A stretch of 12,821 bases of DNA. It comes from Octopus sinensis (Eukaryota). The first letter of the stretch is position 1, and every line of letters begins with the position of its first letter. The position numbers and the translations under genes are program-made. The notes under the pieces are model-generated. The model made no database searches. It was not told the DNA's origin and was given only the letters and a program-made list of their open reading frames with translations. The stretch covers positions 1-12,821 of the forward strand of contig NW_021826465.1 of NCBI RefSeq assembly GCF_006345805.1, written 5' to 3'. Shown here in pieces: positions 2,782-12,821 of this stretch.

Positions 2782-2981
2782 TCTAGCACACACACACAGA
2801 GGCATGAGCATACATACATTTAATATATATACGACAGGCTTCTTTCAGCTTTCTTCTACTAATCTACTCACAAGGCTTTTGTCGGCCCAAGACACTTGCC
2901 CAAGGTGCCATGCAGTGGGACTGAACCCAGATCCCTGTAGTTGAGAAGCAAGCTTCTTACTACACAGCCATGCCTGTGCCT
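2503..2981 (-). mobile_element. SINE family D (family A head with a different body), internal (CT)n at 2746-2783
   Basis: Head gacacttgcccaaggtgccatgcagtgggactgaaccc...cacagccatgcctgtgcc. The body cagaatttgttgaagcag...cctgttgccaaccctcacctgttt is homologous to 7570-7964. Confidence 0.8.
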
Positions 2982-3010
2982 ATTATATCTATATACATAC
3001 ATATATATAT

Positions 3011-3413
3011 ACTCTTTTACTCTTTTACTTGTTTCACTCATTTGACTGGGGCCATGCTGGAGCACCGCCTTTTAATCGAGCAACTCGACCCCGGCACTTA
3101 TTCTTTTGTAAGCCCAGTACTTGTTCTATCGGTCTCTTTTGCCGAACCGCTAAGTGACGGGGACGTAAACACACCAGCATTGGTTGTCAAACAATGCTAG
3201 GGGGACAAACACAGACACACAAACACACACACGCATATATACATATATACGACGGGCTTCTTTCAGTTTCCGTCTACCAAATCCACTTACAAGGCTTTGG
3301 TCGGCCCGGGGCTATAGTAGAAGACACTTGCCCAAGATGCCATGCAGTGGGACTGAACCCGGAACCATGTGGTTGGTAGACAAGCTACTTACCACACAGC
3401 CACTCCTGTGCCT
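3011..3413 (-). mobile_element. SINE family A, near-intact tRNA-derived CORE-type SINE
   Basis: On the minus strand: A-box-like TGGCTGTGTGG (3392-3402), B-box-like GGTTCAGTCCC (3349-3359), then ATCTTGGGCAAGT resembling the start of the CORE domain, an internal microsatellite and an (AAAAGAGT)2 tail. Many CpGs are retained and (TA)n flanks both sides. Confidence 0.9.
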
Positions 3414-3414
3414 A

Positions 3415-3457
<43 letters not shown>

Positions 3458-3545
3458 GTGTTTATATACATGTGTTTGTATGTGTGTGTTTATGTGTGTG
3501 TGCATATATGTATGTTTTATACATGTGTGTGTATGTGTGTGTGTG

Positions 3546-3580
<35 letters not shown>
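3413..3580. repeat. Compound (TA)n/(TG)n/(CA)n microsatellite
   Basis: Read directly. Confidence 0.9.
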
Positions 3581-3581
<1 letters not shown>

Positions 3582-4098
3582 TATGCTGGTATGTAATAAT
3601 ATCAAAGGATAATCTGAAATATTGAAATTCCCATTACCAGTGGCCTAGTGTGCAAAAGATTTAGTCAATTCACTATATATTATTCAATAAATACAGTGTA
3701 CATTCAAACACACTTAAGAGGTATCCATCATAGGACTACTGCACGCTAGAGAGGACAGTTAAATTCCAAACCACTATTGGGATATGAAAAATAAAATCAT
3801 ATATATATATATATATATATACTATAACACCAACTAAAAAAAAGGTCTGAAAACCCATTGGTCCAGAATTTAATGGTAAATGATTTATTTTTCATATCCC
3901 AAATAGTGTTTGGAATTTAACTGTCCTCTCTAGCGTGCAGTAGTCCTATGATGGATACCTCTTAATGTGTTTGAATGTACACTGTATTTATATGAATAAT
4001 ATATAGTGAATTGACTAAATCTTTTGCACACTAGGCCACTGGTAATGGGAATTTCTAATATTTCAGATTATCCTTTGATATTATTACATACCAGCATA

Positions 4099-4100
<2 letters not shown>
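3580..4100. repeat. Long inverted repeat: arms 3580-3800 and 3880-4100 (221 bp each) with a 79-bp spacer
   Basis: Manual reverse-complement alignment of the arms gives 0 substitutions and 6 single-base indels. Confidence 0.97.
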
Positions 4101-4130
<30 letters not shown>

Positions 4131-4212
4131 CACACACACATAAACACATACATATATATATGCACACACACACACATACACACATATATATATTATATAT
4201 ACACACACATAT
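4098..4212. repeat. Compound (TG)n/(TA)n/(CA)n microsatellite
   Basis: Read directly; loosely mirrors 3485-3580. Confidence 0.9.
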
Positions 4213-4530
4213 ATTCTTTTATGCTTTTACTTGTTTCAGTCATTTGACTGCAGCCATGCTGAGACATTACTTTTAAACATATTCTATCAGTCTATTTTGC
4301 CAAACCACTAAGTTACGGGGGACGTAAACACACCAGCTTCGGTTGTCAAGTGATGCTGGACACAAACACACACAAATATATATACAATGGGCTTCTTTCA
4401 GTTTCTGTCTACCAAATTTACTCACAAGGCTTTGGTTGGCCTGTGGCTATAATAGAAGACACTTGCCCAAGGTGCCTAGAACCATGTGGTTGGTAAGCAA
4501 GCAACTTACCACTCAGCCACTCCTGCACCT
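4213..4530 (-). mobile_element. SINE family A with internal deletions (B-box lost)
   Basis: cttttacttgtttcagtcatttgactgcagccatgctg...gcccaaggtgcc|tagaaccatgtgg; the gcagtgggactgaaccc segment is absent. Confidence 0.88.
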
Positions 4531-4570
4531 ACATATATATATATATATATATACACATACACATATATAT

Positions 4571-4752: not shown

Positions 4753-4917
4753 CCACACACACACCACCACACACACACACACACACATATTATATATTAT
4801 ATATATATATATGTATATATAATTATATATATATACATATATATACATATATTTGTATATATATATATATATATATATGTATACATATATTTATATACAT
4901 ATAATATATATATATAA

Positions 4918-4955
<38 letters not shown>

Positions 4956-5030
4956 TGTATACGTATATTTATACATACATTATATATATATATATATACA
5001 CACACCACACACATATATATATGTATATAC
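4753..5030. repeat. Long (CA)n/(TA)n compound microsatellite
   Basis: Read directly. Confidence 0.95.
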
Positions 5031-5780: not shown

Positions 5781-5828
5781 TAAACTGAGAAGACTAAGTC
5801 TCCATTGTACAGACAATAGACATACAGT

Positions 5829-6434
5829 TATTCTTCTATTTGTTTCAGTCATTTGACTGTGGCCATGCTGGAGCATCACCTTTAGTTGAAGAAATCAACT
5901 TATTCTTTGTCAGCCTAGTACTTATTCTATTGATATCTTTTGCCAAACCGCTAAGTTTTGAGGATGTAAACACATCAAGATTGGTCGACAAGTGATGTGG
6001 AGGGGGGGGGGGGAGCTGGCAGAACCGTTAGCACACCGGGTGAAATGCTTAGCAGTATTTCGTCTGCCGTTACGTTCTGAGTTCAAATTCCGCCAAGGTC
6101 GACTTTGCCTTTCATCCTTTCGGGATCGATTAAATAAGTACCAGTTATGCACTGGGGTCAATGTAATCGACTTAATCCGTTTGTCTGTCCTTGTTTGTTT
6201 AGCCCCTTGTGGGTAGTAAAGAAACAGATGTTGGGGGGACAAACACACACACAAACATATACATATATATACGAAGGGCTTCTTTCAGTTTCCATTTACC
6301 AAATCCACCCATAAAGCTTTGGTTAACTTGAGGCTATAGTAGAAGACACTTGCCCAAGGTGCCACGCAGTGAGACTGAACCCGGAACCATGTGGTTTGTA
6401 AGCAAGCTACTTATCACACAGCCACTCCTGTGCC
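5829..6434 (-). mobile_element. SINE family A (host of a nested family B insertion)
   Basis: Collinear with 3011-3413 on both sides of 6006-6226. Confidence 0.9.
6006..6226 (+). mobile_element. tRNA-derived SINE family B, near-intact, nested with probable TSD
   Basis: A-box-like TGGCAGAACCG (6017-6027), B-box-like GTTCAAATTCC (6081-6091), tail ttgtgggtagtaaagaaa. Flanked by gatgtggagggg (5994-6005) and gatgttgggggg (6227-6238). Confidence 0.9.
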
Positions 6435-6452
6435 TGTTATATTTAACATTAT

Positions 6453-6657
6453 ATTCATCATCATTTAAAGTCTGGGGTGTCCATGCTGGCAAAGATTTGG
6501 ATGGTTTGACCAGAGCTGGTAAGCCAGGAGGCTGCAGCAGACTCCTGTCTGATTTGGCATGGTTTCTACAACTCAAAGCCATTCCTAATGCCAACCACTT
6601 TACAGAGTGTGCTGGGTGCTCTTGCATGGCACTTCATGGGTATTTTTACATGACACT
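6453..6657 (-). mobile_element. SINE-like family C
   Basis: catcatcatttaaag...ccatgctggc...ttcctaatgccaaccactttacagagtg is homologous to the copies at 1821 and 9731. Confidence 0.8.
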
Positions 6658-7580: not shown

Positions 7581-7964
7581 TAACATGAATCAGACAGAAT
7601 TTGTTGAAGCAGGTTTACTATGGCCAGATACACATCCCTGTTGCCAGCCCTCACCTGTTTCCAAGTGGGGTGAATATTTCCCATTGGCCAGACATATTTT
7701 CACAAAAGACAGGAACTGAGGCACACAGCTTGCATGACACTGACGTCCATTGACAACTGTCGTATGAAGTCAAGGCAAGGAGACAACAACACACACACAT
7801 ATAATGAGCTTCTTTCAGTTACCTTCTACATAATCCATTCCCAAGGCTTTGATCGGCTTGGGCCAATAGTAGAAGGCACAATTGCCCAAGGTGTTGCTCA
7901 ATAGAACTGAACCAAGGACAATGTGGTTGGGAAGCAAACTTACTACGCAGCCATGTACCTGTAC
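7570..7964 (-). mobile_element. SINE family D
   Basis: Collinear with 2503-2981 (body, short microsatellite, A-type head). Confidence 0.8.
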
Positions 7965-8379: not shown

Positions 8380-8464
8380 AGTAGGGATAACCGACAAATA
8401 TATAAACGAAAAATACATATACATAAATATATATATATAATATATATATATAGATTACATATAC

Positions 8465-8520
<56 letters not shown>

Positions 8521-8597
8521 GTAATATATATATACATGTATGTATGTATGTATGTATATATGCAGACACATACACCCATACATAATATACATACATA
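8380..8597. repeat. (TA)n/(TATG)n compound microsatellite
   Basis: Read directly. Confidence 0.9.
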
Positions 8598-8599
8598 GC

Positions 8600-8942
8600 T
8601 TTTGTATTTTATTTGTTTCATTCATTGGACCGTGGTTTTGTTGAAATCCTACCTTGAAAGGTTAGTCAAACAAATTGATTCCAATATTTGTTTTTAAGCC
8701 AGATACTTCTGTTATCAGCCTCTTTCTCCAAACCACAAAGTTACGGGAATGTAAACCAACTAACACCAATAGTCACGCATTAAATGGAGAACAAGCACAA
8801 ACTCATAGATACACACACTTATAAATACATACACACATATATGGCAGGCTTCTTTCAGTTTCTGACTACCAAATCCACCCACAAGACTCTGGTTGACCTA
8901 GGGCTATTGTAGGAGATACTTGAGCAAAGAGCTGTGTAGTAA
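8600..8942 (-). mobile_element. SINE family A, old, head-truncated
   Basis: tttgtttcattcattggaccgtgg...ggcttctttcagtttctgactaccaaatccacccacaag. Confidence 0.75.
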
Positions 8943-9730: not shown

Positions 9731-10102
9731 TTATTGTTTAATGTCTGTTTTCCATGCTGGCATGGGTTGGATGTGTGTGGCGGGGTGACTGGTGTTAGGG
9801 TGGTGAGGAGACTGCACCAATCTCTTCTGTCTGATTTGGCATGGTTTCCTATGGCTGGATGCTCTTCCTAATGCCAACCACTCTGAGAGTGTGGGCTGGA
9901 TGCTTTTTATGTTGCACCAGAAGCAGCAGTGCAGCTATCAAATAACTTACAAGACAAGACATCCCCCCGCCCCCGCCTCAACTGAGGTGGGGTGTCTAGC
10001 ATTGACAAAGATGGCTTTGTGCCAGACAAGAAGAGGTTAGAGTGTGAGGGACTGAAATAGGTGTCTTGCATGCAGTAAGAAGAGATTACATGACACCCTC
10101 AG
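9731..10102 (-). mobile_element. SINE-like family C, longer copy
   Basis: tttaatgtctgttttccatgctggcatgggttgg...ggctggatgctcttcctaatgccaaccactctgagagtg; right boundary approximate. Confidence 0.75.
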
Positions 10103-10369: not shown

Positions 10370-10536
10370 GTAAATTGACCCTAGCACTTTTTTTAAAGTC
10401 TGGTCACTTTTGGATGTTAACAAACCAACACCAGTTGTCAAGTGGTTATGGGGACAAACACAAACATGTATCTATATACATACATACATACATATATATA
10501 CACATATATATATATATATATATACACATACATACA

Positions 10537-10578
<42 letters not shown>

Positions 10579-11242: not shown

Positions 11243-11463
11243 TTTGTATTATAGGCACAAGGCCTGACATTTTGGGGCAGGGGGATAGTGGATTGCATCG
11301 CCCCCCCCCCCGCCCAAGTATATGACTGTACTTATTCATCGACACTGAAAGGATGAAAGGTAAAAAGTCGAGCTCAGCAGAATTGAAGTCAGAATATAAA
11401 GAAACAAAATACTACTTGGTAGTTTTCCCCGGCATATGAATGATTCTGCCACCTCACTGCCTT
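11242..11463 (-). mobile_element. SINE family B variant, copy 2
   Basis: ctttgtattataggcacaaggcctgacattttgggg...ggatgaaagg...gattctgcc. Confidence 0.8.
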
Positions 11464-11860: not shown

Positions 11861-12060
11861 GGGGTACCTCCGTAAGTGTGTCCCGCACCCCAGTGACTTT
11901 GTTTCCTCATAACTTTCAGAAAAATGGATATATTGTTTTTTGATAAAATTTTCTTCAAATACCTTTCAGACGGTATAAATCAAGATTTTATCGGAATGTA
12001 ACGTAAAGAAAAGACAAATACTGACAGATCATAATTTTTTTCCGAATTTCAAGTTTGTTT
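11861..12060 (+). mobile_element. MITE-like family E, copy 1
   Basis: ggggtacct...ccccagtgactttgtttcctcataactttcagaaaaatggatat is homologous to 12270-12410 (inverted) and 12694-12821. Confidence 0.6.
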
Positions 12061-12108
12061 TGTTTTTTTTTTTTATTTTGTTCATACGTCCTTGGTCCTG
12101 TGAGAATG

Positions 12109-12130
12109 AGAGAGAGAGAAAGAACAGAGA

Positions 12131-12164
<34 letters not shown>

Positions 12165-12206
12165 AGAGAGAGAGAGAAAGAGAGAGAGATGAGAGAGAGA
12201 GAGAGC

Positions 12207-12270
<64 letters not shown>
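12109..12270. repeat. Long (GA)n microsatellite
   Basis: Read directly. Confidence 0.97.
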
Positions 12271-12274
<4 letters not shown>

Positions 12275-12410
12275 GACGCCCCAGTAATTATTTTCCGTGA
12301 AGTTCCCATGTAATCATAATCTATACCTCTGAAATGAATTGGTAGAAAATTTAATTAAAAAAATATCCATTTCTCAGAAAGTTATGAGGAAATAAATTCG
12401 GGGTCGTACT
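12270..12410 (-). mobile_element. 141-bp MITE-like family E copy with terminal inverted repeats
   Basis: Ends AGTACGAC...GTCGTACT form a perfect 8-bp inverted repeat that extends imperfectly (gccccagtaattattttcc vs cccgaatttatttcc). Confidence 0.6.
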
Positions 12411-12693: not shown

Positions 12694-12821
12694 AGGGGTT
12701 TACCTACACAAGAGTGCCCCATCGAGTTTGTTTCCTCATAACTTTCAAAAAATAGGTGTAGGTTTATTTTAATGAAATTTTCAACTAAGACGTTTTATGT
12801 CATAGGTGTAGCGGCATACCT
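12694..12821 (+). mobile_element. MITE-like family E, copy 3 (runs off the window)
   Basis: ggggtttacct...gagtttgtttcctcataactttcaaaaaatag...ttttaatgaaattttc. Confidence 0.55.

Follow-up and report, generated by a model that had tools for sequence, protein, structure and literature searches.

The DNA analysed here, which we call the window, is a stretch of 12,821 nucleotides from Octopus sinensis (contig NW_021826465.1) in which microsatellites and SINE fragments are dense. One octopus SINE is represented by at least ten copies, whole or fragmentary, at 2790-3412, 4215-4530, 5828-6445, 7782-7953, 8577-8922 and elsewhere, and these copies are 68-87% identical to each other. Several carry a TA-rich microsatellite at both ends, as if they had entered TA tracts or older copies' tails on integration; across the window and O. 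bimaculoides loci, a TA/CA microsatellite is found at the SINE 3' end in 5 of 11 cases. Two of the copies flank a near-perfect palindrome (Table 1). Both have the tRNA-like head on the minus strand, and the two regions align with each other directly rather than inversely (3124-3453 with 4282-4570, 75.5% identical by BLAST). SINE copy 1 shares 89% identity over 401 bp with a chromosomal locus of O. bimaculoides, 50 kb of DNA from that species yields 15 matches to the SINE, and SINE-derived peptides match uncharacterised Octopus bimaculoides proteins. No exon-like ORF was found in the 12.8-kb window, a Pfam search of ten window ORFs returned only noise (E > 0.05), and no tRNA genes were found in the window. 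The palindrome sits in non-coding, repeat-rich octopod DNA.

Table 1. Features of the palindrome and its surroundings (positions in the window)
Feature	Position	Strand	Description and basis
SINE copy 1	3012-3412	-	tRNA-like head at right end; left boundary, outside the palindrome; direct repeat of 4215-4530
Outer TA tract	3413-3447		Proposed outer half of the recipient (TA)n, with the outer junction; edge fuzzy; palindrome alignment starts at 3448
Left outer arm	3448-3579		Compound microsatellite (TG/TA/CA) mirroring 4101-4214; from alignment and flank scores
Left unique arm	3580-3799		220 nt; proposed inverted copy; from gapped alignment with the right arm
(TA)11	3800-3821		Proposed inner half of the recipient TA tract, with the inner junction
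Unique spacer part	3822-3880		59 nt; symmetry centre 3840 in its A8 run
Right unique arm	3881-4100		220 nt; proposed source; from gapped alignment
Right outer arm	4101-4214		Compound microsatellite directly joined to the SINE copy 2 3' end; from alignment and flank scores
SINE copy 2	4215-4530	-	Orientation as in copy 1; right boundary of the structure

Gapped alignment of the left unique arm to the reverse-complemented right one gives 217 aligned columns, no mismatches and six indels of 1 nt each. Of the extra bases, C 3713, C 3771 and A 3793 belong to the left arm and those at 3903, 3992 and 4056 to the right; half of the six (3771, 3793 and 3903) fall in short homopolymer runs. The arms are separated by a spacer of 81 nt (3800-3880), in which (TA)11 adjoins the left arm and 59 unique nucleotides follow. 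Symmetry is centred on 3840, within the A8 run of the unique part and outside the TA tract. When an arm was compared with the whole window by BLAST, its partner was the sole match (97.7% identity with gaps, E = 2e-98), a match for which chance is far too weak an explanation. Neither SINE similarity nor any other window repeat was found in the arms by BLAST against the window and by SINE comparison, and BLAST located no second copy of spacer positions 3822-3880 in the 12.8-kb window. An initial annotation had reported a near-perfect palindrome with 221-bp arms and, between them, a 79-bp spacer that begins with (TA)10. The palindrome is confirmed with slightly different dimensions (220 nt, 81 nt and (TA)11), and gapped alignment reproduces what was reported of the differences: no substitutions, and six 1-nt indels that give each arm three extra bases and of which three are in homopolymers. 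The description of the arms as unique, non-SINE sequence is likewise borne out, the window search having returned the partner arm only.

Mirror symmetry continues outside the unique arms: it runs first through CATATG and next through the compound microsatellite, (CA)n(TA)n(TG)n and onwards, with its limits at about 3448 (left) and 4214 (right). The alignment of the outer flanks contains 11 mismatches and 18 gap columns, all of them in microsatellite. Scored against each other, the flanks reach 143 in inverted orientation, versus 85 in direct orientation; no other microsatellite block of the window, much longer ones included, gives more than 120. The landmark TGCATATAT is common to both flanks and in register. 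These scores argue that the outward extension of symmetry into the flanks is probably real, but it is weaker evidence than the unique arms because each (TG)n(TA)n(CA)n block is self-complementary. The loose symmetry first noted at about 3485-4185 holds and reaches somewhat further, and it stops at about 3448 and 4214 because the SINEs on either side are direct, not inverted, repeats. The CATATG beside the unique arms is itself palindromic, and the ends fade into TA/TG/CA microsatellite, so that neither a terminus nor a target-site duplication can be defined. Self-complementary (TG)n(TA)n(CA)n compound microsatellites, capable of forming hairpins, occur at 3519-3586 and 4089-4180 and also at 1585-1658, 8523-8596 and 10443-10574.

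The remaining repeats of the window differ in kind. A second inverted pair, 11895-12007 and 12292-12399, is 113 nt long and 77.9% identical, with its members 285 nt apart; it flanks a (GA)82 microsatellite (12108-12271), and a related direct copy lies at 12717-12795. Another family, distinct from the main SINE, forms an inverted pair at 6013-6157 and 11313-11455, and other interspersed families are represented at 1925-2000, 6526-6623 and 9806-9907 as well as at 2546-2732 and 7590-7778; copies of the non-SINE families are 72-83% identical. Two very long, imperfect (AT)n tracts, 4787-4998 (about 108 units) and 8413-8561 (about 76 units), are self-complementary and would therefore inflate unfiltered genome-wide counts of near-perfect local inverted repeats. 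Across 63 kb in all, made up of the window and 50 kb of O. bimaculoides DNA, every other inverted pair whose members lie within 3 kb of each other consists of SINEs or other repeats and is only 70-87% identical. Judged by these alignments, two unique-sequence arms that are about 100% identical are locally conspicuous, though their class is already known.

The nature of the differences between the arms bears on both their age and their accuracy. Repeat copies in the window differ by 245 substitutions versus 49 indel events, 22 of those being of 1 nt. Under ordinary divergence, six indels among six differences would thus have a probability of about 2e-5, a rough value given that the repeat pairs compared are not fully independent. 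This contrast in pattern indicates that the indel-only differences are almost certainly long-read consensus errors and that the true arms are probably identical. Short-read polishing uses reads that have no unique placement in identical arms; because of this, and because nanopore calls are poor in such DNA, indel-only consensus errors are to be expected in a real palindrome. Nanopore base-calling of true inverted duplications is known to be poor, with bases missed (PMC7229812). As to age, the SINE copies in the window have diverged by 13-32%, versus no substitutions between the palindrome arms (0 of 217, which places the 95% upper bound on arm divergence at about 1.4%); the arms are therefore either very young or kept identical. 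By this comparison the event appears young relative to the SINEs. Both earlier suggestions fare well here: that the indels reflect long-read error is supported by the 245:49 ratio and the P of about 2e-5, and "very recent" stands in the form that the arms are very young or kept identical. Arm-to-arm disagreement by indels only could also be put to use, as an internal gauge of the consensus error left over in a long-read assembly.

With moderate confidence, we interpret the structure as a real, young, local inverted duplication, produced by a switch-and-return template switch into a TA tract and likely neutral, in which the six 1-nt indels would be consensus errors that have survived in a duplicated, hairpin-forming region. 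A switch-and-return event makes an inverted repeat in a single step (PMC5453318), and the locus does contain such a pair: one segment matches, in reverse complement, sequence close by on the molecule, with 0 mismatches and with an extension to about 3448 and 4214. The left block (3448-3799) has TA tracts on both sides, at 3413-3447 and 3800-3821, and this bracketing is consistent with the layout expected of an inverted copy dropped into a single TA tract.

The layout itself is read directly from the alignments; from it we infer the following steps. A polymerase would have left its template while copying the TA microsatellite beside the head of SINE copy 1. About 770 bp away, it would have primed again through TA microhomology where the microsatellite tail of SINE copy 2 has its TA-rich distal end. 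About 330 nt would then have been copied as reverse complement, from 4214 down to 3881, before the polymerase went back to the TA tract. The product of such an event would have the order (TA)n, reverse complement of 3881-4214, (TA)11, 59-nt spacer and source, and would belong to type 1-4-3-2 of the four-point model class, with an unusually long copied fragment. The polarity of the event, with the right arm as source, is weakly suggested by sequence context, because SINE copy 2 runs at its 3' end straight into the right microsatellite and 5 of 11 SINE 3' ends carry microsatellites. Both junctions lie in low-complexity DNA, where microhomology and exact breakpoints are unreadable. A point against a template switch is that the symmetry of the outer arms depends on microsatellite alignments; moreover, gene conversion, instead of youth, could account for arms that are identical.

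Simple self-priming of a (TA)n hairpin was also considered as the main model and rejected, since the TA tract is off-centre and 59 unique nucleotides precede the right arm. A (TA)n-primed fold-back fits poorly because self-priming should place the TA tract at the centre with almost no asymmetric spacer. The initial annotation had proposed a fold-back or template-switch duplication seeded at (TA)n; the TA tracts at the junctions agree with that proposal, but (TA)11 lies away from the centre at 3840.

We regard it as rather unlikely that the animal has only one arm and that the second stems from chimeric fold-back long reads or from a mis-join in the consensus. The six indel-only differences are what a locally poor consensus of long-read type would contain, about 0.55-0.6% of genomic reads from ONT are of the fold-back type, and such reads have junctions enriched in homopolymer and dinucleotide repeats and can recur at one site (PMC12870357); the junctions here are in TA repeats. 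Fold-back chimeric reads (PMC12870357) and the palindromes of whole-genome amplification (PMC6218980) likewise juxtapose near-perfect forward and reverse-complement sequence at simple-repeat junctions. In a fold-back artefact read, however, the second half is the reverse complement of the first, symmetric about the midpoint (PMC12870357), and the mirror runs to the read end. Instead of extending to read or contig ends about a single junction, the symmetry found here ends at about 3448 and 4214, bounded at about 350 nt per side by SINEs that are not mirrored but direct. An artefact would accordingly need two separate switches, and the chimera would also have to prevail in the consensus. No adapter-like sequence occurs in the spacer: comparison with SMRTbell, ONT, Nextera and TruSeq adapters revealed no similarity, with local scores of at most 9. 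The poor consensus does not favour an artefact either, as a real palindrome also yields indel-rich nanopore calls. A long-read palindrome artefact, which had been put forward as the second option for this locus, is made less likely by symmetry that ends on both sides and by flanking SINEs that are direct repeats.

It is also unlikely, in our estimation, that the structure is a non-autonomous foldback-type DNA transposon or a long-TIR MITE inserted into the TA/CA microsatellite between the two SINEs. Its size of about 520-770 bp, with inverted arms taking up nearly the whole length, would suit such an element, as would TA-rich ends compatible with a TA target-site duplication. The arms of Drosophila FB elements have short tandem repeats towards their ends, and so does the palindrome; in foldback transposons such as FB and in long-TIR MITEs, the arms likewise fill most of the element and the outer parts are short tandem repeats. 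Those families, however, are multi-copy and have termini and target-site duplications, whereas the octopus palindrome occurs as one copy in the small sample searched. Searches of the window, of the 50 kb of O. bimaculoides DNA, of metagenomes, of viral sequence and of predicted proteins brought up no further copy of the arm, whole or partial, though these are weak tests. Specifically, the O. bimaculoides DNA held no copy of the arm where the SINE matched 15 times, and the amount of cephalopod DNA searched is small, such that only a SINE-like copy number is ruled out. When metagenomes were scanned for exact matches to a 24-mer and a 23-mer of the arm, there were 0 matches, as in the viral scan; exact look-ups of the ORFs spanning SINE copy 1 and the left arm, and the spacer and the left arm, returned nothing on record; and a comparison of all open arm and spacer frames, concatenated, with proteins gave 243 word candidates, none of them scoring. 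In addition, neither a defined terminal motif nor an unambiguous target-site duplication is visible, and the lack of substitutions would demand a very recent insertion of a master copy whose arms were identical.

An older inverted repeat is a less probable explanation, and we give it little credence. On this reading, intrachromosomal gene conversion or quasi-palindrome correction would have preserved the identity of its unique arms, with drift in the microsatellite parts. Such a history would account for outer microsatellite arms with 11 mismatches and several gaps beside unique arms with none. Microsatellites mutate orders of magnitude faster than unique sequence, and the same contrast is equally expected in a young duplication. 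Template switching is known to turn imperfect inverted repeats into perfect ones (PMC5453318), a point in favour of correction.

Least probable of the DNA-level readings, and very doubtful, is a retrocopy made by target-primed reverse transcription, in which a 5'-truncated read-through transcript of SINE copy 2 and the flank downstream of it would have inserted in opposite orientation into a nearby TA tract as an orphan 3' transduction: the left block on the plus strand does correspond to the RNA sense of a minus-strand transcript running from SINE copy 2 through the microsatellite and the arm, and the insert is bracketed by TA tracts as SINE copies 1 and 2 are, but the source arm is followed by the 59-nt spacer before TA, whereas the copied arm adjoins (TA)11, which would need an extra deletion, the end of the copy has no poly(A) or SINE-type tail, and the first run of T4 or longer on the minus strand lies inside the spacer rather than at the arm end. 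The absence of the 59-nt spacer and of a tail from the copy led us to rank this candidate low. Read on the minus strand from SINE copy 2, the first runs of at least four T are those at 3836-3843 (A8; T8 on the minus strand) and 3852-3855, both in the spacer. Pol III read-through of SINE copy 2 would therefore be expected to end there, including one arm and forming no hairpin.

A young duplication by template switching, the reading we prefer, would also have consequences for nucleic acid structure. As single-stranded DNA, positions 3561-4119 are predicted to fold with -260.3 kcal/mol (z = -48), and on this prediction the palindrome is able to adopt a hairpin or cruciform shape. When the spacer of the yeast Alu-IR system is lengthened from 12 to 100 bp, inverted-repeat-induced recombination in double-stranded DNA falls 300-fold (PMC10164571). 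Because the octopus spacer measures 81 nt, the persistence of identical arms of 220-350 bp is unsurprising. The element is most likely neutral.

As RNA, positions 3500-4180 have a predicted folding energy of -460.7 kcal/mol, versus -145.8 +/- 5.9 for shuffled sequences (z = -53). This prediction lends support to the stem of about 220 bp envisaged earlier for a spanning RNA, with more than 220 bp in the predicted fold; a transcript containing the locus would form a dsRNA stem of 220-300 bp. Processing of the stem by ADAR or Dicer is something we infer purely from the predicted fold.

Whether the locus is a functional hairpin-RNA locus, acting as a source of endo-siRNAs or as a dedicated ADAR substrate within a transcript, is a separate question, and we consider it highly improbable that it does so. 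The predicted stem is extremely stable, hyper-editing in octopus is exceptionally strong and tied to long near-perfect dsRNA (PMC5625713), and young Drosophila hpRNAs arise by inverted duplication (PMC10317233). Against these points, neither an exon nor a protein domain was found in the 12.8-kb window, the arms match no Rfam family, and the folding potential is not special. Local inverted repeats of near-perfect identity are reported to be unusually common in octopus, where for 0.44% of random 50-bp loci an inverted partner of >95% identity lies within 2 kb (PMC5625713), and fold potential alone is therefore unremarkable; the figure is probably inflated by self-complementary (TA)n, the survey having used no low-complexity filter. 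An Rfam search at E values up to 1 found nothing in the arms and, in the flanks, only sub-threshold matches to mir-297 and mir-466 (RF04217 and RF04052), with scores of 60.3 versus a gathering threshold of 90 and 58.2 versus 85. These matches occur only in the (TG)n(TA)n(CA)n flanks and in other microsatellites of the window, and they appear on both strands because the flank blocks are self-complementary; they are a low-complexity resemblance to rodent microsatellite-derived miRNA families and not evidence of miRNA genes. Drosophila hpRNAs typically derive from their target gene (PMC10317233). For the octopus arms, no such target homology was found, all open frames matching no protein among 5.8 billion.

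A bolder version would combine the template switch with function, and it too has very little probability: a switch of ~330 nt inside a transcription unit would have given birth to a hairpin-RNA gene whose perfect stem of at least 220 bp already serves as an endo-siRNA source or as a strong ADAR hyper-editing substrate or sink. RNA hairpins and new miRNAs have been found to be created by template switching (10.1101/2021.04.15.439925; 10.1101/2023.04.19.537475). If the octopus locus were indeed such a newborn gene, hairpin birth by template switching would extend from miRNA-sized stems to long dsRNA, and this in a cephalopod. Even on the plainer reading of a real but probably neutral duplication, loci of this kind would be raw material for dsRNA, ADAR hyper-editing and small RNAs, as well as potential sites of DNA fragility.

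Several known systems share parts of this architecture. Inverted SINE or Alu pairs and palindromic repeats that act as ADAR hyper-editing substrates (PMC5625713), along with Drosophila hpRNAs (PMC10317233), have a similar potential for long near-perfect dsRNA; the octopus arms differ in being unique sequence at about 100% identity, versus 70-87% for nearby SINE pairs. The yeast Alu-IR constructs (PMC10164571) have comparable identical arms of about 220-350 bp and a short spacer, and they represent the class that extrudes hairpins or cruciforms. The octopus spacer of 81 nt falls within the range where fragility in double-stranded DNA is strongly reduced in that system.

Fold-back inversions and origin-dependent inverted-repeat amplification (ODIRA; PMC4689423, PMC10766183) are, like the event proposed here, replication-based strand switches that give inverted duplications, and they take place at short inverted or self-complementary sequences. 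Their products are inverted triplications of kb to Mb or hairpin-capped molecules with the seeding repeat at the centre. The octopus palindrome, unlike those products, is sub-kb and interstitial, consists of two copies only and has its TA tract off-centre.

A close likeness is to the four-point template-switch mutations of Loytynoja and Goldman, types 1-4-3-2 and 3-2-1-4 (PMC5453318), in which a perfect inverted repeat with an asymmetric spacer likewise arises in one event. If real, the octopus palindrome would be a natural and clean case of switch-and-return over a long stretch (about 330 nt), its two junctions each lying in a TA microsatellite, and it would illustrate how a perfect long hairpin can arise in a repeat-rich cephalopod genome by a single step; the event itself is of an ordinary kind. 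In four-point template switches the points of leaving and returning are close together (PMC5453318), and here both would lie within one TA tract. Genome scans for template switches mostly report copied segments of tens of nucleotides, whereas the segment copied here would measure about 330 nt.
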